DNA of 57,874 bases from Basidiobolus meristosporus CBS 931.73 (Eukaryota > Fungi > Basidiobolomycota), in contig MCFE01000561.1 in assembly GCA_002104905.1 (NCBI GenBank), positions 1 to 57,874 on the forward strand, written 5' to 3'. Numbering within the stretch: the stretch's first letter is position 1; each line of letters begins with the position of its first letter. Below the pieces are notes generated by a model. It was not told the DNA's origin and did no database searches. It was given only the letters and a program-made list of their open reading frames with translations. Positions 2,391-57,874 of this stretch are shown piece after piece. A program made the translations under genes and the position numbers.

Positions 2391-4372
2391 TTAACCTATG
2401 CTTCTGCCCATACCACCAACACTCGCCGCAAGAGAAAGCGCACCATCCCCTTCATAGGTGAAGCCAGCAAATTGTTGCTGTATTGTCTCGGACAGTCGAG
2501 AGTCTTCTGCCACCGAATCATGCGGTACTTCGGAAGTGAACTCTTCATCAAAGTTAGAGGTATCGAAAGCGGAGGCCTAGTGGGAATGTATCATTAGAAA
2601 CCACTCCATCCAGATTGTACGAGTCCACTGTATTCAATATGACACATACCACATTAGGCTTAAACGGCGGCTGATAACGCTTGGCGAGTAATTTAGCCCA
2701 GTCAATCTCAGCGAAGAACGGATGCGACTTGATTTCGTCGGCGCCTTTATTTCCCAATCGCTTAGCGGGATCCCGCTCCAAAAGCTGTAGTGACGGAACA
2801 ACGGTGAGAAATAAGTAACATACCGCAGCAGAGTGATCCAAAAACTTACCCCATTTAAGAGACTTCTGGCATGAGCACTAACATGGTCTGGGTATCTTAG
2901 TTCGTCCTCGATGATTTTACGGTACATTTCATGGGTGTTTTCGTCATAGAATGGTGGCAGCCCGGTAAGCATCTCATAAAGTAGCACTCCAAATGTCCAC
3001 CAATCCACTGTTTTGGTGTACCCTTGACCATATAATAGCTCTGGAGCAAGGTACTCTGGAGTCCCGCAGAAGGTATTTGTAGTCTCATCCTGGTTCATGT
3101 TGAGTTTACAAAGGCCAAAGTCACACAATGCAATATGACCATTATAATCCAAGAGAATGTTCTCTGGCTTTAGATCACGATAAATTACGTTGTAGCTGTG
3201 AAGACGGTCCAATGCACATAGGAGCTCTGCGGCATAAAATCTGCTGCGGGTTTCATCAAAACGGCCTTCACGTTGTAAATGCAAGAACAGCTCGCCACCG
3301 TTCACGAAAGCCAGAATGAGATACAGCTTTCCCGGACTTTGAAATGAGAATTTCAAGGGAACAATGAATGGATGATCAATCTGTCCGAGAACGGTTCTTT
3401 CGGCCAGAGTGTGTGTCACTTCATCCCGGGAAACGATCTTCGACTTGTTCAAAATCTTCATGGCGTAGATTCGGTTGGTGTCGATTTTGCGAACTTGCAT
3501 CACCTAGTTGGCAACATCAGAATTGATGGAAACCACCGACTTCTTGGACTGCTATTACCTTCCCGAAACTTCCCTTCCCAATCAACTTTAACAAATCGAA
3601 GTCATCGACCGATAATGGTTTTGCGCGCTATATCGCCCCGTTTTACTCTGATTAGAATACGCCTGTTCATCGCACAAGTTCACAAGAAACTCACCTCAAT
3701 TCTCTTATAGCATAATTGAACTCGAATGTGGCCCTCCCCACCTTTGACTGAAAACCAGTCATCCTGGAGACGCTGTAACCGATGGGTTAGACAAATCTAC
3801 GGATGCTTTGGTCTGCACCTGCCACCCCATGGGGTATTTCTAAAGACTTACCCCATCAGCAAATTCGGGAGTTATCTGCACTGAACCCAAGAGGATTGCC
3901 TTTCCTGAAGATTTGCGAGGATCTTCGGTTCTCACGTACATGGAAACAGTCACCTCGCTCTCGCAAGAGACATCGCTGTAGAGGAAGAGTTAGACGTGGT
4001 TGACAAGTACCATATGGCTTTGTTGAGTCTAAAAGTCCTCACAAGTTGGCTTTATATTTCCAAACCGGGTTTTCCTGTTCGCCGCCCAAAGCTTCAATCA
4101 GCAAGTCATTCCTGTCAAACTCTAGAACTACGTATGGTAATCTCCAGGTTTCCATTTTGTCAGTTGCCTTTGCGCTTGAGGGTAAGCTTAAATTCTTGGC
4201 TTCGACCACTCGGATAAGCAGGGTGCCAGATTTGGGTGCTTTAAATCTTGGAGATAGCGGCTCCGAACTAGCCAACTTATCTTCTATTACGTTTAAGGAT
4301 AAAAGTCAGTGTCTGTTGCGTCCAAAGTCAAAAAGAAGCCTGGGTACTTTTGGGGGATAATTTAAGAGACAT
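2391..4372 (-). CDS. YPK1: Ypk1/Gad8 (SGK-like) AGC serine/threonine kinase with N-terminal C2 domain; multi-exon
   Basis: Spliced model assembled by hand. ATG at 4372 (MSLKLSPK), GT-AG introns at e.g. 4284-4347, 3504-3558, 2785-2849 and 2577-2649. C2 region ([11 protein letters not shown]...PYVVLEFD...NPVW), kinase motifs [21 protein letters not shown] and [13 protein letters not shown]-terminal PPFKP and hydrophobic motif QFAGFTY, TAA at 2391-2393. Confidence 0.95.
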
Positions 4373-14140: not shown

Positions 14141-15265
14141 ATGTCTAAGCTACTTGGGGTTATCATTTTTTTGGCGCTAGCCTGCCTAGGTAAGCGTTAC
14201 CAGCAGCATTTGGCCAGTGCATAATCCACTCACCGAGCCGCAGCTCTAGTCCGCGCTGATCCACTTGTAGACATTCCGCATACCTCGTTGGATATGACAG
14301 TGAGTGAGATCCCGAATTATTCACGACGAGTGGCTATTGCTATCGACCGTGTTGATGATCTGGTTGGGGAGGGCGGTGCCCTGGTTGCCGCGAAGTTTAG
14401 CCATGTCGTCTTGGACTTTGAGATCACCAAGGATCAGGTAAGTGTTGATCTGGGATGAAGCGCAGGTGGCACTTACTCATGTCTGTTGAAGGTTAAATTG
14501 AATGGCGTTCCGATCCAAATGGGAACCTCCAACATCAAGGTACAACAGGTTTATTTCCGTAACCGCTTTTGAAGTGACCACTGATTGATCGATGTTTAGA
14601 TCGATGCCTCATTGGCCCTTACACCACAGGCCTTGATGATCTCTCCGGATCAGGTGCTTGGTGCCTTTGATCAAGGTGTTGTTGGCCTAGAAGTGACGGC
14701 CACTAGAGACAAATTGTACAATTCTACTTTACGTCGGGATGTTGATCGGGTCATTTTGGAGGAGATTATTACTGAAGTAAACGGATGCGAGGTGGTACAG
14801 ACTGACATCAGCCAGCAAATCATCGATCTTGATGATGAAGGAGGATATATGCCATCCTTGAAGGGAGAGCTAGCGATCCCTGAGCCAAACATTCCACCCA
14901 CAGTCGCAGAAATTGGTAAGTTACCCGCACCATCATTTGCTCATGAGGCACCTCACCAAACGGACACTTTAGACCCACTGGCCTCCTCATGCCACTTCCC
15001 TTACCTTAACACCAGACTACACACCTGGCTGCACCAGAATCCAGAGCTGGCCAGGGCTAGCGCGCTTATTACCCTGATGGTAAGTGGGCTCCTTATGTGC
15101 TTTGTACTACTTCCATTGCTAGTATATCGCCGCATACGCGAGTCGGATGGCCTGGACTACCTTCATGATGAGGAATACGCCAGAATCGCGCAATATGAAG
15201 CCGAATTAGAAGATGAAAAATTCGACTCTTACAATAGCCATGAGAATCAAAGATTGATGCATTGA
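14141..15265 (+). CDS. Type I membrane protein of unknown function (signal peptide, ectodomain, TM helix, acidic tail), 4 exons
   Basis: ATG 14141 MSKLLGVIIFLALACL, intron 14190-14243, then exons ALVRADPL...ITKDQ / VKLNGVPIQMGTSNIK / IDASLALTP... join in frame. TM segment ALITLMVSGLLMCFVLLPLLVY followed by RRIR. Confidence 0.85.
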
Positions 15266-16787
15266 TGTTGCGTCTTCCTACTGTTTTCAAATCATCTGTT
15301 CATGCCAACAAATAAATCAACCTCTGGATGAGCCTATTTCCGGTAAGCCTCGATACATTGGTGAGCAACCGTGTGAATATCAACTATTTGCTATTCGCCT
15401 GCGCTTTGCTAAATACACAATGGGTAAGAAGAAAAGCCAGGGCAGGTGCTCCTATAAGGCCAGTGACAAAATTAACCAGTTGAGGTTTCAACGGATGTGC
15501 ATTCATTAATTTCTAAGTACTACAGAATCAGTAGTTATGGCCTCGAGCTTGTCAAAAGTTGGGACGACTAAACATTCCATTGCTGGAGGGATTATATGCT
15601 GAGTCTTGGGTTGGGAATGCCAGTGGCACCACTATCATTAGTAGCAATCTGAAACTACTGCTCAAAGTGATGGAACTAAGCTTAACAGCTGCCACAATTA
15701 TCGTCACGCTGGTATTCTAGATAATATCCGAGGAACCCTACAGTTACAATGTAGTATTCAATGACTGTAGCTCATATCTGTGCCACTGTGGCCACCTCAC
15801 CAGTTGAGCCCATCACCTCCGAAGGGCCTTGTGGCAACCCTACAAGAAAGGTAGGGATTAATTGCATGATTCCATCAGTCTGGATGAAATTGGCAATGCA
15901 GCGTGAAGAACGTGATGTAGAACGTGATCGCCTCCATTTATCCGAACTGAGAGCCGACTGACGAATCAATTTCCAGGTTGTGGGTGCTTGACTTGAAATT
16001 GATCGGCTAGCCAATTTGAGCCGTAGTAACACTGAAAGTATGATGGCTGACTAGTGCTGAGGATTGATTTCTGGGAAGCAAGCCAACAGCGTAATGCATT
16101 GATTAATTTGAGTTGAGGCTGCAGACCTCTGATTTCTGACCGCGGTGAGAGGTCATTGTTTAGGTTTTTAAATTGTTCATCTGCACGCAGTTAGATGGGC
16201 AGCTTGTTTGGTTCTTGAAAGCTCAATCGGATTGCTAAATTATTTTGAATCACCATGTGGTGTTGAAGCAACAGGCACTGGCTTGACACGGATAACATCA
16301 GCCACACCTAATCCCATAGGTACGGAATCTATGGCTTTTCGCCCTCGGTAAAATGTTGTATGGTAATTACCACGATCTCATCACTAGTGGATGTTGAAAC
16401 ATTCTCTATGGATGGTGAATGGTGAGGTTGAACCTGCAAATTCCGCCGTAACATCGATTAGAGATCACATCGGTGAGTCGACTCTTATACCAGAGATCAC
16501 CTGGTATGAGGTAGAACAGCCCCAAAGCCTGATATTCATCGAAGTATCAGTTTAATTGACAGTGCCAGTCGGATGCCCCTAAACTGCCTCCTGAACAGTG
16601 ATTAGAGCAGCACTTCCATATTGAGAGAATCAGCCCAAAACAGTTTTAGATCGTTTTTGCAATGCCAGCTTTTCCTCTTGACAAAACGAGATCATGTCAA
16701 ACCAATGGGACATCTGTAGTACATCCAGTCCGTAGGCTATATAAGAGCATCGTTATTGCCATACTCCAACACCAACTTTAGCACAAC

Positions 16788-17015
16788 ATGTTTTGTCTTC
16801 CTATAGATAAGCTGCACTCACAAGATCGCATGAAAACCCGCAGTATCAAATGGTCTGCTAGCAAGAGACGCCCTTGTCTCCATGAAACCCATCTCCCATA
16901 TCGATGCGATGACAATGGTGCCATTGAAAACCGGTCCACATTGCCTCGCTTCGAGGATCTCTTGGGGACGGACAGAATAGTCCGGGTCACCCTCACTCCC
17001 ACCGTCGCACTGTAA
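16788..17015 (+). CDS. Microprotein family member 1 (75 aa)
   Basis: Shares the C-terminal motif Y-x5-G-x-I-x-NR-x2-LP-x-FE-x-LL-x4-IVRV-x-LTP-x-VAL* with the ORFs at 18789 and 21050. TATATAA at 16738-16744. Confidence 0.85.
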   Translation: MFCLPIDKLHSQDRMKTRSIKWSASKRRPCLHETHLPYRCDDNGAIENRSTLPRFEDLLGTDRIVRVTLTPTVAL

Positions 17016-18788
17016 AAACCACACGCACTTTCTGCGTCCTGAATGGCGAACTCCAAACCTCAATTACTCTTCCCAAACCACCACATTCTACTGCTGGATA
17101 GCACAATCGCATCCTTGAAAGATCCTATGTTGGCTGTTCCCGATTTGTAAAGTACTTAGAAGGCTCTTAAATTAAGCTTGTCAGTGGATGTGCGTGTAAT
17201 AAAGTTGTGTAATCTCGTGAAGCATCTTGACCAAGTTCGAAATCGAGGATTCTCCATTGATTACCAGACATCAACGTTCTTCCAGCCCAAGTCTCTTATT
17301 TGTTGCTTTCTTGATTGCAAAAGATAAGCCCCTTGTTGCTGGGAAGAGTGTGAAACACATGGCTAATGTAGTCGCATCCGATCCTAAATATGGATGCTGT
17401 CCCGACCATGTCCAAGGGAATCTCGCAAAACAATGATGCGAAATCCAAGCCGTAGAAGCGACATCCTCAGATACGAGAATTGAGCCAATCCTTGGGTTCT
17501 GCTGTGATACAGACCCAGCGAACATTCAATTTTTCCGTGGACTGTGAACTCTGCTCCTTTTTCATTTGTGCTGTTTGTCGAACTTCGAGGGTGCCGAATT
17601 ATGTTTTTGTTTATACCAACGAGCGCAGCACTATGATCATGGTCAAAGCACCGAGCCTTATCAAAGAGAACAATCAAGGAGGCCAGTGCCTTCATTTACC
17701 TGTGCAGCTGCCATGATAAGGACTGCATACATCTTTGAAACCATGGTGACCAAGTTGCTAGCAACTCACGAAAGATCGTTTGATAGTCAGACTTAGGGTC
17801 GGTACAGCGAGTACACCTACATCTGTTCCACCTCTTGTTTTCCGCATGCAACTATCTTCTTGAGTGATTGGAATGTTGGTGGTGGAGACCATGCCTTCCT
17901 GTATGCATCCCCGTTGCCCGTATTCCAAGTGTGAGTACGTGTGCGGAATTTGAATACTGAAAAGATCGACTGTTTACCATCCTCAATATGGAAGATATTG
18001 AGAAATCCCATGCATATAGTCGAAATATGACAATTGTATATCGTTGTACTTTTTCCGACGATGGCCAAGAGTCGACCGTTGATTGGGTCGCTGGCTGTTC
18101 GTCAGCTATTAATAAACTTGAAGTTCGTAAGCAGACCTGTTCAGTTGGTAATCAATAGTGTTGGCTATTGTGTCAAACAGTTATACGTCGAGCAGAATGG
18201 AGGTCGACTGCCAAATTTGATTCTTAGCTCAGGCCAATCGCCGCCTTGCATCAAGGCGGCAGTATCCATAGCATGACTTCCAGGCGAGCCCTCATTTATC
18301 CAGGAATCGCGAGTACAGCTCCATCGTGATGTGCATTCTTGAAACTACTGATTCGGCTGCTTGGTCAAACTTTAGGGTTTGTTATGATGACTAAGCTAAT
18401 GCAATGCGCCTATACAAGTCAAGAGTGAATCTTCGGTTTTTGATAAATTACACCATGTTTTAAATGGTATCTGGGAAGATTCAATGTAAGCGTATTCTAC
18501 GTAGCTAAGATGGGATGTCGTTTCATTCTGTTCTAAATCGGTCTCAATTCACTGGATCCGCTTTTCAGAGATCAGTGGCAAATGACAACTCATCCCTTGA
18601 CATGAAGCGGTGATACCATCTATGCAGCTACGGAGGGCCAAATCCGTAGCTAACTTGATTTCTCCAAACCTGATGCAAAATCACCAGCCTTGGGCGTACC
18701 GAACCCAGTATAAAAAGCATTGACATCATCCTAAGTTTCGGTAGACAGCATTCCATTCTTTATTACGCTCATCATTGATCATTTCAGC

Positions 18789-19049
18789 ATGGCTCGCCTC
18801 TGTTGCTTCAAATTCCCTCTAAACAAATATCACCTTCTGGAAACCTCCGAAACTGAGTCTCCCAAGTCTGGGTACTCTCGAATTGTTCCACCACCCAGAA
18901 AGGATTCCCTTAGGCACAACGGCTCTTTAGTGTACACTTTTAATCAGGATGGGACTCTGCAGAACCGCTCCAGCATCCCGCGGTTCGAGCAGATGTTGAA
19001 GAACAATAGCATTGTTCGGGTGAAAATCACTCCTGCCATCGCCATTTAA
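18789..19049 (+). CDS. Microprotein family member 2 (86 aa)
   Basis: C-terminus YTFNQDGTLQNRSSIPRFEQMLKNNSIVRVKITPAIAI* aligns without gaps to members 1 and 3. TATAAAA at 18709-18715. Confidence 0.85.
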   Translation: MARLCCFKFPLNKYHLLETSETESPKSGYSRIVPPPRKDSLRHNGSLVYTFNQDGTLQNRSSIPRFEQMLKNNSIVRVKITPAIAI

Positions 19050-21049
19050 GCCGAGACTTGACCACTGATCAATTTCCACCACCAGACCGGATCCCAAAAT
19101 CCAAGATCCCATCGAACGCCGCCGCTGTGTCTCATGTAGTCCACATCGGAAGTATCATATCCAAGCACCACGTCCGTATTTGGTTAATGTGCTCCCTCTA
19201 CGAATCACAATTACTAGTAGTGAGCAGGTCGTTCATCGATAGCAACATCCTTACTGCTCTGACTAAAGTCATGTATAGCTAACCCAACTGCAAAATGTTA
19301 ACCAACCCAAAGATAATACATAACTTAAGCCTGACCAAATAAACCAGACCAATCTAAATTGAAAATGAAGTTCACTTCGTTCGAATTTCCATAAAAGTCA
19401 CCAATTTGATCAGATCAGGATCAGCTGAGATATGGGGTGACCAAGATTGCTTGCTGCAGGAAGCTGCGATGTTCGATCAGCTACCTTGGCCAGTTGGGAT
19501 ATCCCCTCGTATTGCGAAGCTTAACCTCTTGTTGATCTGTTTTTACCCTCAGGCACTAACCGAAAACCGCCTGATACGTTTCACCATAGACGAATTGGTT
19601 TCTCCTGACAGCTGCCCGAAACTTTGGCTATTTCACTTGGCAATCACGAAAGCTGGCTAAAACCACGTCCCCATTTTGGTCAGATTACCACATGGTAACG
19701 ACACCTGTGAAGAAACTCCGGTCTCCAGGAGATCCTTTGTCGGAGATATTGGCAAGTGCCATCTGTCTATATGACAGTAAGAAATGGCGAGGTATGGTAT
19801 TCTTAATGGGGCCCAATTGGGATGAGCCTCCCAAACCCATCTAGGTGAGCCCTCTGTGATGTCGGTAAAACTCATTTGTACTGCCCCTACGCCTACTGCA
19901 AATAGTGCAAGTCGGCGGCAATATCGATAAAACTCGTGAAATAAGTAGTGATGGCGGTCTCGTCAGCTGAGTTGCACCAAGATAACGAAATGTATCATAA
20001 GCTCAGCCGACCTTGACTCGACCGAGAGGCCCTCGCTGGTCACATGAGCCGCCCAGATTGGATGGTGGTTGAGTTGGATTACTAAAGAACATGTCTCAGA
20101 ATGCGCGGTTGGCCAATCATTCGATTATCTGGTATCTTTTATGGTTCTTGAAATGGCTGAGAGTCGAAACTGATCGTGTCTCAACTGAATTTGCATTGAA
20201 GGCATGTCTTAAGAGAGGATATATTTGTCTTATTGTCCATAAACTACATAGAATATCATTTAACGCTCTTCTCGGCTGAACAGCATCAACTAGTGTCACA
20301 AAGTCACCACGCATGTGATCCACTCGGTTTATTATTAGCAGCGAGAAATCCCAGGGCTGACAGAATAGGTAAGCAATATAAACGACTGTCTAGGCCCCCT
20401 CGCCATGCAAACAAAAGCTTACGAAATTTAGATAATCACTGCACTAGGTTTAGAATGGGCTTTCTTTTGCATAAGATAGGAGACGGTCTACTAAACAGGG
20501 TGGCCGCTGTTGACCACTGGCTGATTTGGGCACAGGTAATATATGGATATCCCAAGTAGGAAGCGAGATTATTTATTTTTAGCCGGCTTGCCTTTTGGTT
20601 TCACCTCATCTTCAGAAATATGTCCGTTACAGTAAATCCCAAGTGGATGGAGCAGCCAGTTGCTCTTCGCCAATTGGAGGGGGACGGACAGCTTTGGTCG
20701 GAAGATCAATCGAAAGGTCAGTGATCATCATAAAAGGGCTTTTCATTGCAATGTATACTAATCCTTAGGACTTGGTCCAAGCGTTTCATAGTGATTGGTG
20801 AGGATGGGTTGATGGTGGAAACTGTTTAATTCATTAGTTCGGGAAAATTATCCCAGATATCTTTACATACAGGATATCAAATGAGAGCAAGCAACTACCG
20901 CTCAACGATATGGGATGGTTGTCTGATTGAGTATCTGTTCTATAGGGATAATCTAACATTGGGTGATATTAAGGGAGTGATGGTAACTAGTGATGATTAG
21001 CTGGATGCTCAGTGAGGATGTCTACGTACACGACTTCGATGGAGATAGA

Positions 21050-21289
21050 TTACAGTGCCACAGTGGGGGTCAACGACACCCGTACGATGCTGTCGGTTAG
21101 GAGCAGATCTTCGAATGGAGGGAGCTTTGTCCGATTCTGAATAATACCGGATTTGTCGCAGACGTATGGCGAAGCATTCGACCGGATTGTGGAGGAATTG
21201 GTGGAAGAGGAATCCTTCGTAAACAAGGATTCTGAGGTGGAAATTGGATGGTAGTGAGGATCACTTTTCAAACAAGGTATGCAGAGCAT
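21050..21289 (-). CDS. Microprotein family member 3 (79 aa)
   Basis: C-terminus PYVCDKSGIIQNRTKLPPFEDLLLTDSIVRVSLTPTVAL* is about 28/39 identical to member 1, with many synonymous codon differences. TATAAA on the minus strand at 21337-21342. Confidence 0.85.
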   Translation of the reverse strand: MLCIPCLKSDPHYHPISTSESLFTKDSSSTNSSTIRSNASPYVCDKSGIIQNRTKLPPFEDLLLTDSIVRVSLTPTVAL

Positions 21290-23369
21290 TGGGCAACTTT
21301 TTTTCGGATGCCAAGGATGGGCGATCAGTGAGTGAATTTATAGTCCAGGAGGATCACCCAGAGGCCCTTCCCAACTGCTTTATTAAAGAGAAACCTTAAT
21401 GATCAAAATCCGAGGCACCATATTTGGTCGGGTACGAAATATAATTCCACCGAGACTTCACCATACATATACGGGTCCCTCCGAAACCACTGGCCCATCC
21501 GTCTCCCTTTCCCAGATAGATGACGAGCTTGATAGGAAAGATGGGCTTGGTCTCCAAAAAAGGCGACTCTACCCATATTTGGCCTCGGAAGAATTCTGTC
21601 TGGATGCGAAAAAAGGATGCCTTGGATCAAGGATGGAAAGAGCTAAGGGGTATTTCCGGTTATGAGTGAGTCCGCACATTCCGAATGCGCTCTCAACTTG
21701 TGCGTAGCCAGAAGCGGATGGGTATTTATTAAGCAATAATGAATTGGTATGTATAGGGATTGGATAAGGCACTTCAGACACCGTTCGTTTATTGTCATCA
21801 TACATCATCCTTGGAAGCGGTGACCGTCCTGAGTTGGGCCGATTGCGGAGTTCTAATACTGGTTTTGAGTCGGCAGGTGACCTAAATTGCGGATACTCGA
21901 GTGATGAGTCAAGGGTAAATCAGTGAGGCCTGCACCTGGTACCGCACTGTAGGCAGATGGTTTGGGGAGAGCAATCGGTGTATTTGATGCACACGCTGAA
22001 TGTTATGGATGTTCCTAAATAATCTAGCTGGGTGTCAATTCAGCCAGGTTCTGGTCGCTATCATGAGACTATGTTCTAAAAGAGGGGGCTTCGCCTGGTG
22101 CAGTTTTGTTAACTGAAACCATGCACAAGCCATGTGGTAGCGGTATGGGTAACGGTAAGGTATATGTGGAATGGATTAACGGGTGTGGCAAATGAATAAT
22201 CGCACGATTGACGGTAGGTAGATTTGGGGTAGATTACCACAGTCACAGAATTCCACCAGATTGCACTTTCCAAAATTCCTTTTCAAGGGCAGGGCAGCAA
22301 TATCTTGGGAGCCGTGCTTTCACCTTCATGGACATCCCAAGATTTAGGCTAATTTGACAGAGCCAGGGTAGAGTCAGTTACAGTCTTGATGAGAATGGGA
22401 CTCCGCCCACTCAGCCAGATAAATACCAGAGTAAAGGTGACGTGGTGGTGAAACTTCTCATGGCAAGCAGAGTCCAGTGACGGAAATACGGCCCGGTCCT
22501 TACTTGGAAACCAACACAAGGGAACGCTATGAAGAATCACTTGCTCTCCAATATATATACGCACGATATTATGCTGATCACATCGATCCCGTTCCAGGCT
22601 GAGATCTCGATTGCTCTTAGCAGATGTCAAATGATCAAAGTGCCAACAATGAATGGTGGGCTGTATTGCGCCTGGACAACTCATTGTTCACTGTGTAATG
22701 TCAGAAATACGCACCTCAAATGGGTATATCCCAAGTAGTGGTCGTCAAGATCAAGCACTGCATCTCCTCTAACTCACCAACCTTCGAACTGCTGTCGTTC
22801 TGATGTTTCAGGTTCATAATCAACCAAGATGCGGCGGTGTTCACGAGCCCAAATGGATATTTACACACAGGTGATGCATATTGGTTCAACACTCAATGAG
22901 GAAGGATCGATCCTCTGAATGAGCGAGCGGCAGACAGCCTTTGAGTGGGGCGGGGTTTTGCTTGCGATCAGGATTCGTTTGTCAATGTCACTTTGGCCAA
23001 TGCCAACAGCCAGAGTTTCAAATACGGCCTTGCATCCAGAGATTGTTTTCCCAACAATCCGATGTGCCAGGAAGTTATCCGCTTTTCTTGATCTGCTTCC
23101 CCATCTGCACTCTATACATCTACGACCCGCACGCACATTTTCGTGTATCCCACGTGCGGCATATTGCAAGCGTCATGCGATCTGAACCTCTTAAATACCC
23201 AGGGAAAGGAAACGTCCAGGTGTTATCCTTTTTGCACTTCTTGTTGGTCGGTGGCTATTTATGAGTCTACATAAGCACTGATCTGGACACAACTTCGCAC
23301 TCTCAATCGTTAGATATCCCAGTGAGTATATCAAGTCATTAGATATTCTCAGCAGTATTGATTCTATCT

Positions 23370-35444: not shown

Positions 35445-38400
35445 TGTTGTAAGAATTTGTAATTCCACCTAAATATTCACCTAACTTAGTCACTTAGATC
35501 ATCACCTTCAAATCCTAGAGAATACTGACCAAATTCCTTGTCGGGATTTACTTAGAATATTTTCACCAAAATACCAGGTACCCAGAACATGAAAATTCTC
35601 AAAGTTGTCCAAACAGCCCCAAACTTTGCACACATGTTCTTGGGACCTTCCTTAACCTATTCTACATGTTTGTAATGCCAAGACCAAGTAAAAGTATAAA
35701 TACTACTTTTACATTCAATAAATCATCAAGTGAAAACCACATAATCTACTTGTTCTCCCAATCACTTCCAATATCTCCAAGACTCTTACAACAGGTTATG
35801 AGCCCCAAGCTGTCACTCTCTGCAATGTCTACTACTGCTATTACTGGAATTTTTCCCTCTGCTGAAAAGTTGGATGGCTCTAACTACCAAGTGTGGAAGG
35901 TGAAGATGAAGATGCTGCTACAAGAAAGAGGCCTTTGGGATATTGTCATGGGAGAAGAATGCCCTCCTAAAAATGTGGGAGAGGAAGCCTTAAAGTACCA
36001 GAAGAAAGAACAAAGTGCCTTTAACTGCATTTGCCTTAATCTCAAGGACAAATTGCTAATTCAATGCTCAAGAGCAAAAACGGCAAAGAATGCCTGGAAG
36101 GCATTAGAAGACGCCTACCAGTCATGTTCAGCTGCTAAGAAAATGTATCTGAGACAAAAATTCTTTACTACAAAGATGCTGTCAGGAGAAGAAATGAAAA
36201 ATCTAATTAACAGAATTACCCTGCTGGTAGATGAGATGGAATCTGTGGGCGTACCAACTACTGATGAGGATGTGATAGTTACCATCCTGAATAGCCTGAA
36301 AGACAAGTTTCAGGGCCTTGTATCAGACCTAGAGTCCAGAACTGAAGATCTGACCTTAAATTATGTATATGGAAGGCTCCTGGATGAAGAATAAGAAAAT
36401 CAAGCGCCAATAAGAAGGAAGAAGAAAATGCTTTGATAAGCAATGATAACCAACAAAGGAGGTACCCAAGACCCTACAAAGGCAACAGCAACCTATTTTG
36501 CAACTACTGCAAAAGGAAAGGACACACATCAGACCGGTGTCTCAAAAAAAGAGATTATCAGCAAAAGAAGCCTGAATATGGAAATGCTGCAACAACTGAA
36601 GAGAGACTATTCATATCTGCACTAAATATGACCACAAACAAGGATTCTCAAACGTGGTATATTGACTCTGGAGCTTCTCAACACTTTACACACCAAAAAG
36701 AACTTTTTACCCAATATCAAGAAATTCCAATTAAGAAGGTTTTCATGGGTGACAATAGAACACTTGATGCAGTGGGAGAAGGAACTATCCAAGTAAACCT
36801 TAGAAGCAGTGAAGGAAGCCATACACTGACCTTTAAAGAAGTACTCTGTGTACCAGAAATAGCCAAGAACCTACTCTCTGTAAGCAAGGCCACGGCAGAA
36901 GGACTCAGTTTCAGTTTTGACAATTCTGGATGCAGGATCACGGATCAAAATGGTGCTCATATTGCTTTGGGCATCAGAGATCAGAATCTATACAAGTTGA
37001 CTTATATTCCATCATATCTGAAGGCCAATATAAGTAACTTAAATGAAGACACACCAATGCTTTGGCACAGGAGATTTGGGCACATCAATTTTGATTATTT
37101 GCGCAAAATGATCAAAGATCAGCTAATATCTGGAGTGAAAATTGATCCCCCAGCTAATTTGGAGCACTGTGAAGCCTGCTTATATGGGAAACAAGCCAGA
37201 CAACTGTTCAAGAGCTCTGGGCTAATCAAAACTAAGAAAAAATTAGATCTAATTCACTCAGATCTGTGTGGACCTATGCAAAATTTATTCTTAGGTGGGA
37301 TGAAGTATTTAATCACTTTTATTGATGATTATACAAGATACACATGGGTCTACTTCATGGAGAGAAAGGAAGAGGCTCTTTCTAAGTTCAGGGAGTTTAA
37401 AGCCATGGTGGAGAGAGAAACTGGTGAAAAAATCAAGAAAATACGCTCTGACAATGGTGGAGAATATACTTCAAAACTCTTCATTCACTTCTGCAAAATT
37501 CATGGGATAAAGCAAGAGACTACTGCACCACACTCCCCACAGCAAAATGGAGTAGCAGACCAAGCTAACAGATCAATAATTGATATGGCAAGATCTAGGA
37601 TCCATGATCAAAAATTATCCAATGATTTTTGGGCGGAATCAGTTGCCACTGCTGTATATCTTAAAAATAGGAGTTATAACAGAATACTTTGTGATTCTAC
37701 TCCATTTGAAGCATGGTATGGATACAGACCAAGTGCAGAACATCTAAGAATATTTGGGTGTACAGCATATGCCAAAAAACTGGCCGGAAATCAGTCAAAA
37801 TTTGAGCCAAAAAGTGTAAAACGCATATTTTTAGGCTACTGCAATGAGAGTAAGGCATACAGACTCTACAATACCAAAGCAAAGAAGCTTATCAAGTCCA
37901 GGGATGTGTTGTTTGATGAAAATTCAGAGTTTTCACAAAAAATGAGATCAGATGATGATGAAAATCTGATCTCAAGTCCACCAATTGTCAGGATGGAATC
38001 AGAGCAAAACAATGAAAATTTTTTCACTCCAGAGGACTCTACAACCATGGCTCAGCCAGAATCAGTGCCCAGAAATATCCCAGAAGTGATCATTCCAGTA
38101 TCAAATGCCCAGAGATCAAATCAAACAAGAAATAGCCCAAATTACTATATCAATGAGGGTACAAACTTAGCCTATGCCTATTCAGTCCATATTGATGAGC
38201 CCCAGACTGTAAAAGAGGCCCTAAATAGCCCTCAGACAAAGCTTTGGAGATCTGCAATGACTGAGGAATATCAGGCACTGATGGAAAATCAAACTTGGGA
38301 CTTAGTCAAATTACCAATCAACCAAAAATCAATTGGATGCAGATGGGTCTTCAAGACAAAATACAAGGCTGATGGTACAATTGAAAGATACAAAGCAAGA

Positions 38401-40127
38401 CTTGTAGCCAAAGGATACTCTCAAATAAAAGGACTTGACTATACTGAGACCTTTGCACCGGTAGCCAAGTTTAATTCCATCAGATTAATATTGGCTATTG
38501 CAGCCAAATATAAGTTTTTTATTCATCAAATGGATGTAAAACTGCATTTTTGAATGGAGAACTTGATCAGGACGTGTATATGGACCAGCCTGATGGGCTT
38601 GTTGACCAAGATAACCCCCATTTGGTCTGCAAGCTTAAAAAGTCACTATATGGTCTCAAACAATCACCGAGAGCCTGGAATTACAAGATAGATTCTTATT
38701 TGGAATCCATGAGTTTCAAAAGAAGTAATGCTGACTATAGTATATACTATAAGCCAGATAGAGCAAATCCAGTTCTATTAGCTCTATATGCAGATGATCT
38801 TATTATAGCCACCAATAACCTAGAAACATTAGAAGAGACTAAATCCAGCCTATCTAAGGAGTTCAAGATGTCCAATCTAGGAGAACTTAGTTACTACTTA
38901 GGGATTAAGTTCTCCATAGACAGAAGTACCCAGACTATTACCCTAAGCCAATCCAAGTATATTAAAGATATACTAAAGAAGTACAAAATGGAAGACTGTA
39001 AACCGGCAGCTACCCCAATGGGGACAAACCTTAACTTTGTCAAAACTCAACCAAATCAAGAGAGCTTGGTGCCATCTGAAAGCCCTGACTTTCCTTATCA
39101 ATCCATAGTCGGCAGTTTGATGTATATCATGCTTGGAACACGTCCAGATATCTATATTCAGTGGGAGTTGTCAGCCAAGATAATCAGAATTATGGATCTG
39201 ATCATATTGCAGCAGTTAAGCAGATTTTTAGATACCTAAAAGGAACTGCTGATATCTGCTTAAGATACACTTATAAGGATTCAGAACAGGATCTTGTGGG
39301 ATACTCTGATGCTGATTGGGGACAAAATATGGAAGAAAGAAGATCCACCACAGGATGCACCTTTCTTTACTGTAAAGGAGCAATTTCATGGAATTCAAGA
39401 AAGCAACCAACTGTAGCACTTTCTACTACAGAGGCAGAGTATATGGCAGCCTGTGAAGCTACAAAAGAAGCAATGTGGTTAAGAAAACTCTTTACAGATT
39501 TAGGCCTATGTCAAAAAAAACACCTATTACTTTATTTCAAGATAATCAAGGATGTATACAATTAGGTAGAAATCCAACTTTTCATGCTAGAACCAAGCAC
39601 ATAGATATTAGACATCATTACATACGTAAAGCTATAGAGAATAACTTAGTTAGCTTAGTTACTGTCCTACAGATGAAATGATTGCAGACATATTTACCAA
39701 ACCATTAGCTAGAGACAAGTTTGAATATCTTAGGTCAAAATTGGGACTAGTCAGTATGAACATTTAGCTGAATGGGAGTGTTGTAAAAATTTGTAATTCC
39801 ACCTAAATATTCACCTAACTTAGTCACTTAGATCATCACCTTCCAATCCTAGAGAATACTGACCAAATTCCTTGTTGGGATTTACTTAGAATATCTTCAC
39901 CAAAATACCAGGTACCCAGAACATGAAAATTCTTAAAGTTGTCCAAACAGCCCCAAACTTTGCACACATGTTCTTGGGACCTTCCTTAACCTATTCTACG
40001 TGCTTGTAATGCCAAGACCAGGTAAAAGTATAAATACTACTTTTACATTCAATAAATCATTAAGTGAAAACCACATAATCTACTTGTTCTCCCAATCACT
40101 TCCAATATCTCCAAGACTCTTACAACA
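35445..40127 (+). mobile_element. Full-length Ty1/copia LTR retrotransposon (4683 bp)
   Basis: 349-bp LTRs at 35445-35793 and 39779-40127 (TGTTGTAA...TTACAACA; 9 differences by eye), TSD CTATT on both sides, PBS GGTTATGAGCCCC at 35794, purine tract before the 3' LTR, gag-PR-IN-RT-RH order. Confidence 0.97.
35825..39767 (+). pseudogene. Copia gag-pol polyprotein with several single-base frameshifts
   Basis: Gag (KLDGSNYQVWKVKM; CNYCKRKGHTSDRC knuckle), protease (WYIDSGASQH), integrase (WHRRFGH, CEAC, HSDLCGP, RSDNGGEY), RT ([15 protein letters not shown]) and RNase H (GYSDADW, TEAEY, KHIDIRHH). The frame breaks near 36390, 38540, 39150 and 39520. Confidence 0.92.
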
Positions 40128-50848: not shown

Positions 50849-51655
50849 CTAAACTATTTTACCTATTCTGCTATTTTCTCCTATACATGACTTTCCTCTG
50901 TATTTACCTACCAATATGCTGAATATCTTTGGATATCCAAATGTGTGCTCTACCCTCACTCTGAAATGATTAAATATCTCATTGTAGAGCTTCTGCTTCC
51001 TGCTAAGCACACCATTCCTTGGCTTCCTATAAGCTGTAATACATCCTAATCTGTGACAATCCTCTCCTATATAGGCTAAGTCTGCCATACATTTCTCCCC
51101 TCTACTGAACTCAGGATGATTCTCTACCCAGAGTGCTTTGTCATGCCTACTTCCAGCAAATGGCCCACTAAACCAGATGATGTTACCCTCAATGTCAGAC
51201 AGTGCTTGAAACTTCACACAGTGTGCCTTGTACTTGCCAGAATAAAAGTGCCTGTGCCCGCTAGAAGGTCTGCTGATCCTCACTGGGAAGGTATCCAAAA
51301 TACTCCTGATATGGAACCTGTTGCTGAACACTCTGGGATATGGAAGTCTATTGGAGCTTCTGAACCTAGTATTCCAAGCTTGCTCTAAGTCATTCATACA
51401 CTCTGCAAGATGGTTCTCCATTGCTGTCAGCTGGGAATGAGAGCTTCTAGGACTTTTGTTGCCATGGATGGTGGGATGAAACCTTGTAGGGCAATAGTTC
51501 TTGTAATAGCAGAGAAGCTTAACAAGGGATCTCCTTGAGTAGATTGGGGTTGATGGTCCACAATACTTGGAATAGATCTCCTCTAGTGTGGCAAAAGGAA
51601 ATCCAGTGGTAGTGATTGGATTGCCAAGAAAAGACCATTCAGATGAGGAATTCAT
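50849..51655 (-). CDS. DDE_Tnp_4-type transposase (IS5 / PIF-Harbinger / ISL2EU-like), 268 aa
   Basis: ILDTFPVRISRP...FYSGKYKAHCVKFQ...G.IIWFSGPFAGSRHD...MADLAYIG...YRKPRNGVL...YN...RVRVEHTFG contains the D-D-E triad and the diagnostic YSGK/HD/KP motifs. The extreme C-terminus may be degenerate. Confidence 0.9.
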   Translation of the reverse strand: MNSSSEWSFLGNPITTTGFPFATLEEIYSKYCGPSTPIYSRRSLVKLLCYYKNYCPTRFHPTIHGNKSPRSSHSQLTAMENHLAECMNDLEQAWNTRFRSSNRLPYPRVFSNRFHIRSILDTFPVRISRPSSGHRHFYSGKYKAHCVKFQALSDIEGNIIWFSGPFAGSRHDKALWVENHPEFSRGEKCMADLAYIGEDCHRLGCITAYRKPRNGVLSRKQKLYNEIFNHFRVRVEHTFGYPKIFSILVGKYRGKSCIGENSRIGKIV

Positions 51656-52013: not shown

Positions 52014-53189
52014 ATGGTCCCCACACCAAGTCTCAACTCATCTTTAGTACAACCTAGACAAAACCCATCCCCCAGCTCACAAGTGCGGTCCGGACCGGAA
52101 AAGTCAATGTCAGATCTGTTTGAGTTCTTGCCAAATGACTTTAGTATGGCCCAAGTATCTATGATGAGCCTTCATATAGATACTTGGGCACTACTGATTA
52201 ATCTATCAGAACTAGATACCTTGGAGAGTCAACAAAGATGGAAGAATTTGAGTAGAAAGCTGTGGCATGAGTTCTACATCAAGATGCCAGCCAATGTATG
52301 TAAGAAGATATATAACAAGACAAGTATTGAAGTCAAGAATGAGCTGAGAGTGAGGGGATTTGATGAAGAAGCAGTTTGGGAACAATTTTGCACGCAATTT
52401 GCACAGTACAGGCTGGATGCGTCCATTTGTGCCTCAACTGTGGGAACCAAAGAGATTTTGAATGAGTTTTTGCCTCAAATGACTAATGCACTGCGTGATA
52501 TATTAGTAGCGCTAAGTGGCTTCCAAGAGCAATATACACAGGACTCATCCAGGCAACAGCTCCAAAGTATCACACAGGGGGTAAGTGAGTACCTTGAGGA
52601 ATCAGATGGTGAGCTTCAGAAGGAAAAATACAGACCGCAAGCAACATTGTCCAGATTGCGCCAGCATGCCTTGCTGGATTCCCTACCATCTCTTGCAACC
52701 ACTGCGCACCAGCGCACGTCAGTCCAGACTATGCCAACACCCTTTACCAGAGTGCCCCATGTTGAGTCAATGCACGTTGGGTCAATGCGCGTGCTTCAGA
52801 GCAAAACTACAGGAACTTGCCAAACTGCTCATTTAGACACAAGTCCATTGGAGCGGACCAAGTCACATCAACATGCAGCATCACATCAAACTCAGCCAAG
52901 GGCCATCTCAACGTGTCAAGGTGCGCCTGCACGTGCCATTTTGCCTGACCATCAGCAAGTTACTTCTGGTGAACTGACTGATGATTACCAACATGAAGTG
53001 CCTCAACCACCAGAGCCCTTGGCAAGTAAAACAACGCGTCAGCACATGGCATTCAGGCTGGTTCAGTTAGTTTGGTTAGAGCAATTCAGCGCGGCCAAGC
53101 CGCAGTATTGCACTCATCAACTAGGTGGCAAAATACTGACTACAAATGCCCAAGTAGCCAAGATGATAGTCAGCCAGGAAGTAGTATAG
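52014..53189 (+). CDS. Unknown 391-aa protein, head-to-head with the transposase
   Basis: Uninterrupted 1176-bp ORF in a region where other ORFs are broken. Helical, aromatic-rich N-terminal half and Q/T/S/H-rich C-terminal half. No family recognised. Confidence 0.65.
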   Translation: MVPTPSLNSSLVQPRQNPSPSSQVRSGPEKSMSDLFEFLPNDFSMAQVSMMSLHIDTWALLINLSELDTLESQQRWKNLSRKLWHEFYIKMPANVCKKIYNKTSIEVKNELRVRGFDEEAVWEQFCTQFAQYRLDASICASTVGTKEILNEFLPQMTNALRDILVALSGFQEQYTQDSSRQQLQSITQGVSEYLEESDGELQKEKYRPQATLSRLRQHALLDSLPSLATTAHQRTSVQTMPTPFTRVPHVESMHVGSMRVLQSKTTGTCQTAHLDTSPLERTKSHQHAASHQTQPRAISTCQGAPARAILPDHQQVTSGELTDDYQHEVPQPPEPLASKTTRQHMAFRLVQLVWLEQFSAAKPQYCTHQLGGKILTTNAQVAKMIVSQEVV

Positions 53190-54625: not shown

Positions 54626-57600
54626 TGTCACGGGTACTGGCGCGGGTACTTGCCTAATATAGAAGTACTTATAGCTAGTAATCTTACATAAAGTGAGGGG
54701 TAACTTATGCAATAAGGTAAGCAGGCGTGATAGTCAACCGGCTTATGGGATAGTACTGATTGGGTAAGACAAATGGGATAAAACTAAAATAAGTGTAGTA
54801 GAGATATAGGGAAGTAGAAAATAAGGGAATGAGCACATCTGTCAGTGGGTGTCACTGTCACCCCACTACATCCACCCCCCTCTCAGCTTTGAACTTGGGT
54901 CAAAGCAAACTAATCTTGATGTGCAAAATTCCTATGCTTGAATAACTTAAGTCGATTTCCAGCAACTGGTGCTCTCAACTGGGTGTTGTCAAGCTCAGAT
55001 ATGTAATAACTTCCATTTCCAATCACTTTGGAAATGAGGTAGGGGCCAGTCCATTTGTTGTCAAACTTCCGACTCCATTGCTTGTCCAAGGTAGAATCAT
55101 AGAGTAATACTGGGTCTCCTAGTGATAGTGGTTTTGGTCTTGTTGGGTGTGATTTGTCAAAGGGCACCTTGTTCTTTAGTCGTGTATCCTTAAGTTGTTC
55201 AGCAGCTCTGCTGATATTCAAGTCATGGTGATCAAGTTGCTGTATGCAAGTTGCAAGGAGGTCTTCAGTCTGCATATTGGATCTCCAATTCAATGAGTTC
55301 CAAGTGACTGTGTTTAACTCAACTGGTAGTATGCAGTCATGTCCATAGAGTAGCTTGAATGGCGATAATCCAGTTGTCCTCTTAGTAGTAATTCTATCTG
55401 CCCAGAGTGCTAGATGTAATTGCTGTGGCCACAGTGTTGTGTTATTCTCACAGGCCTTGACAAGAGAGTTCACCAATGGTCCATGTCCTCTCTCTATCAT
55501 TCCATTGGCTTGAGGGTGGTAAGCTGTTGTGAAAGCTATGTGTATCTTGTACTTTGAGCACAACTCCTGGATCATTTGGGATGTCATCTCTCCTCTGTCA
55601 GCAACAAACTGTCGGATGCAGCCAAATCTGCAGATGATGTCTTCAAGTATAAATCTCCATATGGTATGGCTCTTGTTGTTGGGCAAGGCTCGAGCCTCTG
55701 CCCATCCACTAAGGTCATCTCTAGCAACAATCAGGTACTTTTTTGATCCAGCTGTTGGCATGTGGACAAGGTCAATACCAACCTTTTGCCATAGACAGAT
55801 TGTGTAAGTAGGATGCAGTGGTTCTTCATAACGCTTGGAGGATCTCTTCTGGCAGGCTACACATGACTCAACAAAGTGCTGGACATCATAGTACATGTTT
55901 TCCCAGTAGTACCTCTGAGCTGTGGTATTGTATGTGGCTTCTCGTCCTCTATGTCCTCCTGGTTCTCCTTGGTGGATACTTGTCATGATGTTCAGTTGCT
56001 CTTGAGGGGTGGTGACTACTCTTCTTGGCATAAGTCCAGGCTTCACTCGCTTAAAGAGAAGATCATCTTTAAGATAGTAGTGGTGTGCCTTCTTCCTGAG
56101 TTTTCTAAACTCCTGAATATCCATCCAACTAGGTTTCTTAAGTGTCCTTAGATATTCCTTGATCAGACTCCAGGTAGTTCTCTCTTGGTCTTTGATGGCA
56201 ATCTGTCGGATCTCTGCATCAATAATATCATCAAAGTGAGGGTCCAAGTCTTCAAATAATTGTGGTCCCTTCCTGGAGAGTGCATCAGCCATGACATTTG
56301 TCTTGCCAGGGATATGTTTGACCTCAAAGTCAAACATTTTCAGCCATGCCATCCATCGGTTTGTGGCATCATCAGGTAGGTCAGGCTTGTTGATCATTCC
56401 TATAAGTGGCTTGGCATCTGTCTCCAGGATAAAATGTGTCATGTAGAGTTGTGACTTCAGTTTCCTCAGCATCTTCACAACTCCTAGTAGTTCTCTCTTA
56501 ATCTGTGAGTATCTTTGTTCTCTAGGAGAGAATAGGCAGCTCTCATATCTGCAGGCATAGCGGTTGCCATCTTCATCATCTTGTCCAAGTAGTGCTCCAG
56601 CTCCTATGGGGCTTGCATCCACTGTCAAAATAGGTGGGCATTCAGTGTTTTGATAGTCAAGAGGTCTTAGAACTGGTGGAGATACTAAGGCCTCTTTCAG
56701 TAATTGCATGGCTTCTTCTTGCTCTTCTCCCCAGATAAATGGGGTATTCTTTCTCTGTAGTCGGTAGATTGGTTCTGCTATCTCAGAAAATCTTGGGATC
56801 CAGATCCTAAAGAACCCACAAGCTGCCACAAAGCCACGAGCTTGTGTTAGATTTGTGGGGGTAGGCCAGTTGCATATCTTTTGTGTCTTGGAGTCTCCAG
56901 GTGAGCGACCAAAGGTGTTGCATTTTTGTCCAACAATGGATATCTCTGATACACCAAAGCTGCTTTTCTCACCACTGATGGTGAGTCCAGCTTCTTCAAT
57001 GGCTCCTAGTATGGCATCATTGTCTGCAATATGGTCATAGACAAACTTTCTTACTCCAGGCATAACTTCAGTGGTGTCCCGGAATTTTGATCCTTTGATG
57101 CCTATGTCATCCACAAAGACAGCAAGTTTCTCAGGTATAAACTGGTATAGCACATTCACCATGCATCTCTGGAACTGAGCCACGGAGTTTGTAGCCCCTT
57201 GGCTGAGTCTTGTCATCCTTAATAGTCCAAATGGTGTCTGTAGTGCAAACATATCTCTTGATGTCTCATCAAGGGGAATCTGGTCATATCCTGAGTAGAG
57301 ATTGTATGTTGAGTAGATGGAGTGGCCACTAAAGCTTTCTGCAAAGTCATCAATAGATGGAGGTATAGCAGCATCTCTGATAGTGACAGCATTTGCAGGT
57401 TGCATATCTTGAATGAATCGGAGCTTTCCATTCTTCTTTTTGGTTACAAACCATCTGTTAGCATAGGGCCCATGGCAAGGTTCTAGGATACCAGCTTCTA
57501 TCTTCTTCTTAAGTAGGTCATGCACATCAGCTTGGAGTCCTCTGGGCAGTGGGTAGGGCTTAAATGACCAGGGTGTGTGGGGCACTGTATGAATCTTGAT

Positions 57601-57874
57601 GGGTTTTTCAACCGATGTCTTTAAGAGTCCCATCTCCTTGTCATTATATGAGAAGACCTTATCATGCCTTTTCAAGGTCTCCTTAAATAATAGTATCTCC
57701 TCTGGTGTAAGGTTTCCATCACCAATGATAAGTTGCTTAAGTCTCTCAGGTGTAAGTCGTGTATCATCTGGTGTTTCTTCTGGTGGTCTAATGTAATCAG
57801 CAGGTCGGGATCCATCAGTCAAAGGTGTAAGTGATGGTCTAATCTTCTGTTCTACTGTCTTGTATTTTGTTCGA
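54626..57874 (-). mobile_element. Ty3/Gypsy LTR retrotransposon, 3' part (LTR 54626-54870, PPT, pol); continues beyond the window
   Basis: TG...CA LTR followed by TCCACCCCCC (purine tract on the minus strand), then the RT-RH-IN order. Confidence 0.95.
54910..57874 (-). CDS. Gypsy Pol (RT, RNase H, integrase), open to the window edge
   Basis: RT (QGATNS, FVDDIGIKG), RNase H (LTVDASPIGAG, ETDAKPL), integrase H-H-C-C (HQGEPGGH...CVAC), D-D-E core (DLVH, ADRG, IERGH) and WTGPY module; no chromodomain. The frame stays open upstream of 57822 (RTKYKTVEQKIRP). Confidence 0.95.
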   Translation of the reverse strand, partial: RTKYKTVEQKIRPSLTPLTDGSRPADYIRPPEETPDDTRLTPERLKQLIIGDGNLTPEEILLFKETLKRHDKVFSYNDKEMGLLKTSVEKPIKIHTVPHTPWSFKPYPLPRGLQADVHDLLKKKIEAGILEPCHGPYANRWFVTKKKNGKLRFIQDMQPANAVTIRDAAIPPSIDDFAESFSGHSIYSTYNLYSGYDQIPLDETSRDMFALQTPFGLLRMTRLSQGATNSVAQFQRCMVNVLYQFIPEKLAVFVDDIGIKGSKFRDTTEVMPGVRKFVYDHIADNDAILGAIEEAGLTISGEKSSFGVSEISIVGQKCNTFGRSPGDSKTQKICNWPTPTNLTQARGFVAACGFFRIWIPRFSEIAEPIYRLQRKNTPFIWGEEQEEAMQLLKEALVSPPVLRPLDYQNTECPPILTVDASPIGAGALLGQDDEDGNRYACRYESCLFSPREQRYSQIKRELLGVVKMLRKLKSQLYMTHFILETDAKPLIGMINKPDLPDDATNRWMAWLKMFDFEVKHIPGKTNVMADALSRKGPQLFEDLDPHFDDIIDAEIRQIAIKDQERTTWSLIKEYLRTLKKPSWMDIQEFRKLRKKAHHYYLKDDLLFKRVKPGLMPRRVVTTPQEQLNIMTSIHQGEPGGHRGREATYNTTAQRYYWENMYYDVQHFVESCVACQKRSSKRYEEPLHPTYTICLWQKVGIDLVHMPTAGSKKYLIVARDDLSGWAEARALPNNKSHTIWRFILEDIICRFGCIRQFVADRGEMTSQMIQELCSKYKIHIAFTTAYHPQANGMIERGHGPLVNSLVKACENNTTLWPQQLHLALWADRITTKRTTGLSPFKLLYGHDCILPVELNTVTWNSLNWRSNMQTEDLLATCIQQLDHHDLNISRAAEQLKDTRLKNKVPFDKSHPTRPKPLSLGDPVLLYDSTLDKQWSRKFDNKWTGPYLISKVIGNGSYYISELDNTQLRAPVAGNRLKLFKHRNFAHQD

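Follow-up and report, generated by a model that had tools for sequence, protein, structure and literature searches.

The window analysed here is the whole contig MCFE01000561.1 of Basidiobolus meristosporus CBS 931.73 (57,874 bp), and the subject of this report is a group of three small genes in it, named m1, m2 and m3, which encode related microproteins. A preliminary description of this DNA had reported three intronless open reading frames (ORFs) of 75, 86 and 79 amino acids (aa). Each was recovered at exactly the position reported, and the observation of three paralogous microprotein ORFs was confirmed as real. Gene m1 (16788..17015, + strand) encodes 75 aa, m2 (18789..19049, + strand) encodes 86 aa and is the most divergent of the three, and m3 (21050..21289, - strand) encodes 79 aa; all three consist of a single exon. 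The proteins share a 38-residue C-terminal module, encoded at 16899..17012 (+) in m1, at 18933..19046 (+) in m2 and at 21053..21166 (-) in m3, where it comprises residues 42-79. A TATA element was located upstream of each ATG: TATATAAG (16738..16745, +) 50 nt from that of m1, TATAAAAA (18709..18716, +) 80 nt from that of m2, and TATAAATT (21335..21342, -) 53 nt from that of m3. The preliminary description was right in giving each gene such an element, but its range of 45-75 nt does not accommodate the distance in m2.

In the annotation of assembly GCA_002104905.1, m3 is a called gene of contig MCFE01000561.1 with the product name "hypothetical protein", and the span from 15265 to 21050, which holds m1 and m2, is gene-free. 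The earlier remark that genes of this size are easily missed by annotation was therefore borne out for m1 and m2, which stand on no record, but not for m3.

The C-terminal block aligned without gaps and ended at the stop codon in all three proteins, as had been described. Identity in the block was 27/38 between m1 and m3 (71%, against an earlier estimate of about 72%) and 17/38 each for m1/m2 and m2/m3. When the three proteins were searched against the window with tblastn, they matched one another at E values of 1e-10 to 3e-16, and no fourth copy was found in the window. Nucleotide differences in the 38-codon block were concentrated at the third codon position (25-28 of 38 codons, compared with 6-17 at positions 1 and 2). 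By the Nei-Gojobori method, the proportion of synonymous differences (pS) between paralogues was 0.65-0.84, which is saturated, while the proportion of nonsynonymous differences (pN) was 0.23-0.36 (Fisher p = 7.6e-8, 0.0073 and 5.9e-6 for the three pairs; m1 vs m3, pS 0.79 and pN 0.23). Outside the module, pN between paralogues was 0.46-0.59. The DNA flanking the three coding regions showed no alignment between copies, indicating that only the coding sequence was kept. Saturated pS, low pN and the bias toward the third position agree with the earlier view of old duplicates kept for protein function.

Further members of the family were found in the genus. A word-indexed search with m3 yielded one homologue, KAK9759684.1 of Basidiobolus ranarum (P0002), a protein of 84 aa that is 58% identical to m3 over its full length and has the same first eight residues; it looks like the orthologue of m3. 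A profile built from four sequences, run against 1.84 billion representative proteins, added ORY02426.1 of B. meristosporus (P0004, 95 aa) and KAK9695546.1 of B. ranarum (P0005, 89 aa). The genes for P0004 and P0005 each adjoin a clathrin heavy-chain gene in their own species, indicating a conserved gene neighbourhood. The clathrin-linked cluster of B. ranarum also contains an annotated 91-aa gene (P0007, K7432_012912; L003:1057-1332), and its 87-aa counterpart in B. meristosporus is intact, unannotated and preceded by a TATA element at -53 (contig MCFE01000057.1, L002:8917-9180, + strand). An extra B. meristosporus copy (L002:10537-10656, - strand) has an intact C-terminal block and lacks an in-frame ATG after the upstream stop, and its version in B. 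ranarum (L003, about 2813-2974, - strand) is decayed, with a degraded block. The extra copy would represent a fourth subfamily, and it is either a pseudogene or a gene that needs an upstream exon.

The family found so far thus amounts to eight intact members and two degraded copies in B. meristosporus and B. ranarum. Five members (m3, P0002, P0004, P0005 and P0007) were already deposited as "hypothetical protein", and m1, m2 and the ORF at L002:8917-9180 are new gene calls. All three window proteins carry the family module and the N-terminal octapeptide described below, and their profile E values to the Basidiobolus homologues ranged from 1e-14 to 1e-30. In a maximum-likelihood tree, the two cross-species pairs of the clathrin locus were each grouped at 97-99% support, and the relationships among m1, m2, m3 and P0002 were not settled. 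The tree, together with the shared clathrin locus, shows that at least three subfamilies existed before B. meristosporus and B. ranarum split, and both gene birth and gene death have occurred in the family.

The comparison between species gave the same picture as that between paralogues. Over the full length of three cross-species pairs, pS was 0.78-0.84 and pN 0.21-0.30 (Fisher p = 1e-13 to 6e-16). Between m3 and P0002, pS was 0.74 and pN 0.16 in the module, and 0.87 and 0.26 in the remainder of the protein (p = 3.5e-9). Among the six possible frames, the sense frame alone was open in all eight intact members, m1 included. The motif TATA[AT]A was found 39-80 nt upstream of the ATG in 8/8 intact members; given its rate of 0.00076 per base in the window, the chance of finding it within this 42-nt span in every member is about 1e-12. 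In-frame stop codons lie 9-168 nt upstream of the ATGs of the intact members (9 nt in m1), and gene callers in two genomes modelled five members as single-exon genes. The codon pattern, the selection signature, the single open sense frame, the TATA elements and the upstream stops argue for independent single-exon transcription units and against terminal exons, and on this sequence evidence m1, m2 and m3 are three protein-coding genes, each with one exon and its own TATA element.

Antisense ORFs are present over m1 (16778-17056, - strand, 92 aa) and m3 (21012-21140, + strand, 42 aa), and they resemble each other. In m1, the third codon positions of the antisense frame coincide with those of the sense frame, and the likeness therefore mirrors the conservation of the sense strand. 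A frame of the m1 antisense type is free of stops only in m1 among the eight intact members, and both antisense ORFs were ruled out as true coding frames.

Outside the genus, no credible relative was detected. Profile searches of 1.84e9 representatives recovered only Basidiobolus proteins and two repeat artefacts, and a word-indexed search with a nine-sequence profile matched the five annotated Basidiobolus proteins only. Among the matches of these profile searches, the module occurred in no credible longer protein. When the three window proteins and nine family sequences were compared with Pfam-A at E values up to 10, nothing scored above a gathering threshold; the only matches were two chance ones, each confined to a single member and far below cut-off (DUF1489, with 11.9 bits where 25 are needed; TED_complement, with E 0.023). 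A profile search of PDB sequences at E up to 10 gave 0 matches. Using the model of m3, Foldseek gave 0 matches in the PDB, and VIA-align found none at Z >= 2 among 48,161 chains. A literature search on Basidiobolus meristosporus and its transcriptome found nothing relevant to the family. The statement that the proteins belong to no named family thus agrees with the lack of any Pfam, PDB or fold match, and the family is, as found so far, restricted to Basidiobolus. The claim of an undescribed family was upheld in that nothing characterised is related to it, but not in full, as five members had been deposited.

Three matches were rejected. Protein P0003 (2073 aa) reached E 5.5e-28 as a tandem-repeat artefact in which about 33 identical 63-residue repeats sum weak matches, a case that calls for caution in profile searches with short motifs. 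Protein P0006 (577 aa) is a repeat protein from a phage-like bacterial metagenome contig, and its hhalign probability was 8.7%. A single metagenome locus (L006) was a pattern match only; it lies within a 613-aa bacterial-type ORF, in a different frame.

The intact members have a common three-part architecture. The first part is an octapeptide that begins with Met, continues with a hydrophobic-x-hydrophobic pattern and ends in an invariant Lys; in m2 it is shifted by five residues. The second is a variable linker of 29-49 residues, rich in Ser, Thr, Arg, Lys and Pro, of which 55-70% are disorder-promoting. This range was 59-70% in m1-m3, in keeping with the earlier description of their middles as variable and probably disordered. 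The third part is the 38-residue module, which runs to the stop codon and has the core [LIM]-P-x-F-[ED]-[DEQ]-[LM]-[LM], followed after five residues by [VIYF]-[RH]-[VFM]-x-[LI]-T-P-x-[VI]-A-x, which directly precedes the stop. Lys8 did not vary across nine aligned sequences, nor did P, F, T-P and A of the module. With a Kyte-Doolittle maximum of <=1.0 over 15 residues, every member lacks a hydrophobic stretch suited to a signal peptide or a membrane segment. The N-terminus of the window subfamily reads M-L/F-C-x-P-C, with a C-C pair in m2; the cysteines are Cys3 and Cys6 in m3 and P0002, Cys3 in m1, and Cys5 and Cys6 in m2. Proteins P0002, P0004, P0005 and P0007 (84-95 aa) resemble the window genes in the octapeptide, the disordered middle and the module that ends at the stop. 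P0004/P0005 and P0007 differ from the window genes in that they belong to other subfamilies, have no N-terminal cysteines and are encoded at the clathrin heavy-chain locus.

Two AlphaFold2 runs, one with m3 as the first sequence and one with P0004, gave low confidence throughout except in the module, where the predicted local distance difference test score (pLDDT) was about 80. In both models the module formed a beta-bridged hairpin, a turn and a helix of 6-7 residues over F-E-x-L-L. In the m3 model, mean pLDDT was 73-82 over residues 41-70, with a beta-bridge between residues 44 and 50 and a helix at residues 59-64. The last 10-15 residues were extended. The predicted module is thus no globular fold: a beta-hairpin leads into a short amphipathic helix, and the tail is extended. 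Confidence limited to the module, combined with the lack of any resembling structure, is what would be expected if the module folded upon binding a partner and were not an autonomous domain. Homodimer co-folding of m3 residues 36-79 scored 0.02 against a mark of 0.32; it was run with the alignment unused and the fold of the partner uncertain, and it speaks neither for nor against self-association. The ESM Atlas gave no usable feature match; its own model had a pLDDT of 0.24, and its listed structural neighbours are consequently meaningless.

Three other explanations of the ORFs were weighed. As copia, gypsy and Harbinger elements occur on the contig and degraded family copies exist elsewhere, m1-m3 might be transposon-derived fragments or decaying, non-functional duplicates. 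However, no transposon protein domain of Pfam was matched by m1-m3, the window holds only three copies and their flanks cannot be aligned, all of which also distinguishes them from fragments of a transposable element. In addition, the frames are intact, and nonsynonymous change is strongly depleted at saturated synonymous divergence both within and between species. This selection signature, as read from the sequences, effectively refutes the explanation. It could also be asked whether m1-m3 are the terminal exons of longer genes with introns, in which case the "microproteins" would be an artefact of reading ORFs. Basidiobolus genes are intron-rich, and the copy at L002:10537-10656, with its block and without an in-frame ATG, could need an upstream exon. 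Against this, 8/8 intact members start with an ATG at the conserved octapeptide and have the TATA elements and in-frame upstream stops given above, single-exon models were made by gene callers for five members in two genomes, and the profile search placed the module in no credible longer protein. A terminal-exon origin is therefore considered highly improbable.

A further explanation is that the ORFs encode precursors of processed peptides, either hormone-like or similar to ribosomally synthesized and post-translationally modified peptides (RiPPs), with the variable middle as the product and the conserved termini serving for recognition. The arrangement of a conserved head, a hypervariable middle and a conserved tail is superficially like that of fungal MSDIN-type precursors, and the clustering of paralogues with diversifying middles (non-module pN as given above) would also fit. 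Fungal RiPP precursors of the MSDIN and dikaritin types have either a short hypervariable core between recognition sequences or, behind a signal peptide, repeats separated by Kex2 sites, and genes for tailoring or processing enzymes lie near them. In the family there is no signal peptide and there are no repeats, and among the large ORFs and annotated neighbours of either cluster no peptidase, such as a prolyl oligopeptidase, no methyltransferase, no UstYa and no other tailoring enzyme was seen. Moreover, the middle is long (29-49 aa) and of low complexity, the largest conserved part is the tail, which is predicted to be structured, and the middle is constrained between species (m3 vs P0002, p = 3.5e-9), unlike a hypervariable core. 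The precursor explanation has little chance of being correct, although a somewhat better one than terminal exons.

The explanation that we prefer, at a probability of about 0.55 for the whole, is that m1, m2 and m3 are genes of a Basidiobolus-only microprotein family; the part of it in which the products would be docking microproteins is held only weakly. The module and the N-terminal motif have been kept at saturated synonymous divergence and have no relatives outside Basidiobolus, which implies a specific molecular partner. With low confidence, we propose that the family proteins act as intracellular adaptor or regulator peptides. The C-terminal module would fold onto a conserved putative partner, and the invariant Thr-Pro, close to the free end of the protein, would serve as a switch for proline-directed phosphorylation. 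In the window subfamily, the N-terminal cysteines would be S-acylated and hold the protein on a membrane in the manner of GAP-43. These parts are not equally probable. The suggestion of small regulatory proteins in the preliminary description is a reasonable guess from the conserved termini, the disordered middle and the lack of a signal peptide or membrane segment, and that interpretation as a whole was partly supported. That the module docks onto a conserved partner and carries a Thr-Pro phospho-switch is tentative, with the odds clearly against it, and the N-terminal cysteines of the window subfamily may be lipidated. A still more specific version is doubtful: the family would consist of genus-specific, partly membrane-tethered docking peptides whose hairpin-helix-Thr-Pro tail acts on a conserved enzyme of signalling or trafficking, either as a phospho-regulated pseudo-substrate or as a clamp. 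If true, this would mean a lineage-specific regulatory layer of microproteins, the majority of which current annotation misses.

Several points weigh against the docking microprotein explanation. The products of m1 and m2 are matched by none of the gene records. The other two subfamilies lack the N-terminal cysteines, and membrane tethering through lipidation therefore cannot be the mechanism of the whole family. The extreme C-terminal tail had a pLDDT of only about 60-64 in the AlphaFold2 models. The docking and phospho-switch ideas were drawn from motif resemblance. Finally, the restriction to the genus and the copy number are lower-bound statements made from predicted proteins.

Comparison with known systems gave analogies of limited reach. 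N-termini of the GAP-43 type are dual-cysteine palmitoylation signals. Like them, m1, m2, m3 and P0002 start with Met and a hydrophobic residue, include one or two Cys among the first six positions and continue with Lys; unlike them, the family shows no homology beyond the first few residues and lacks the Cys in two of three subfamilies, so that the analogy would be functional only. There are also small disordered enzyme regulators that use short docking motifs, for example phosphatase or kinase inhibitor peptides. The family is like these in being <100 aa and mostly disordered, with conserved terminal segments, an invariant Thr-Pro and neither signal peptide nor membrane segment, but it has no Pfam or PDB-sequence match to any of them.

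Specific docking motifs were compared with the module by inspection. The RVxF pattern for docking to protein phosphatase 1 is [RK]-x(0,1)-[VI]-{P}-[FW]; the module segment [RH]-[VFM]-x-[LI]-T-P fails it, since its Leu or Ile takes the place of the obligatory Phe or Trp. Calcineurin docking by PxIxIT uses a strand resembling P-x-I-x-I-T that opens with Pro, and the best register in the module, [VIYF]-[RH]-[VFM]-x-[LI]-T, is without that Pro in every member; no RCAN or Calcipressin match in Pfam was found among the family. The hairpin with its aromatic-x-Cys, followed by a short helix with a conserved Phe and Leu at similar spacing, resembles a C2H2 beta-beta-alpha zinc finger. Unlike such a finger, in which two Cys and two His at canonical spacing bind the zinc, the module has at most one Cys and no conserved His; m2 and some further members have Phe or Ser in place of the Cys. 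With one non-conserved Cys and no His pair, no zinc site is possible, and zinc-finger matches were found neither in Pfam nor with Foldseek or VIA-align. Of the tail motifs tried, the LC3-interacting region (LIR), acidic dileucine, PIP-box, 14-3-3 and PDZ class II motifs were rejected, as none fits all members. Only pT-x-x-[VI], which resembles a forkhead-associated (FHA) domain ligand, and the bare Thr-Pro fit every member.

The data describe what appears to be a lineage-restricted orphan microprotein family, new as a sequence family and with a mechanism that is a proposal. The reference annotation lacks m1, m2 and at least one family member at another locus of the genome. The family is thus a tangible example, validated by its selection signature, of microprotein genes in fungi that gene callers overlooked. 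It is small, its genes are clustered and its orthologues in two species are clear, and it is thus experimentally tractable. It also provides one data point on the origin and diversification of lineage-restricted small proteins in early-diverging fungi. Without a function, the family is of moderate rather than high interest.

The remainder of the contig includes several mobile elements. The coding region of a copia-type long terminal repeat (LTR) retrotransposon occupies 35666-39239 (+ strand) and is broken up into three ORFs, of which the first encodes gag (35666-36394, +), the second the protease/integrase together with the beginning of the reverse transcriptase (36433-38553, +), and the third the remaining part of the reverse transcriptase (38550-39239, +). 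It lies within an AT-rich stretch at about 32-46 kb, where the GC content is 0.36-0.39 compared with about 0.45 elsewhere. Toward the contig end, a 970-aa ORF (54910-57822, - strand) encodes a Ty3/gypsy-type pol with RVT_1, RNase H and integrase. An ORF for a Harbinger/IS5-type DDE_Tnp_4 transposase (50849-51655, - strand) is placed head-to-head with a 391-aa ORF at 52014-53189 (+ strand), which has no Pfam match. Near the other end, a 289-aa ORF (2634-3503, - strand) contains a strong protein kinase domain (E 4e-61) and is probably one exon of a larger gene.

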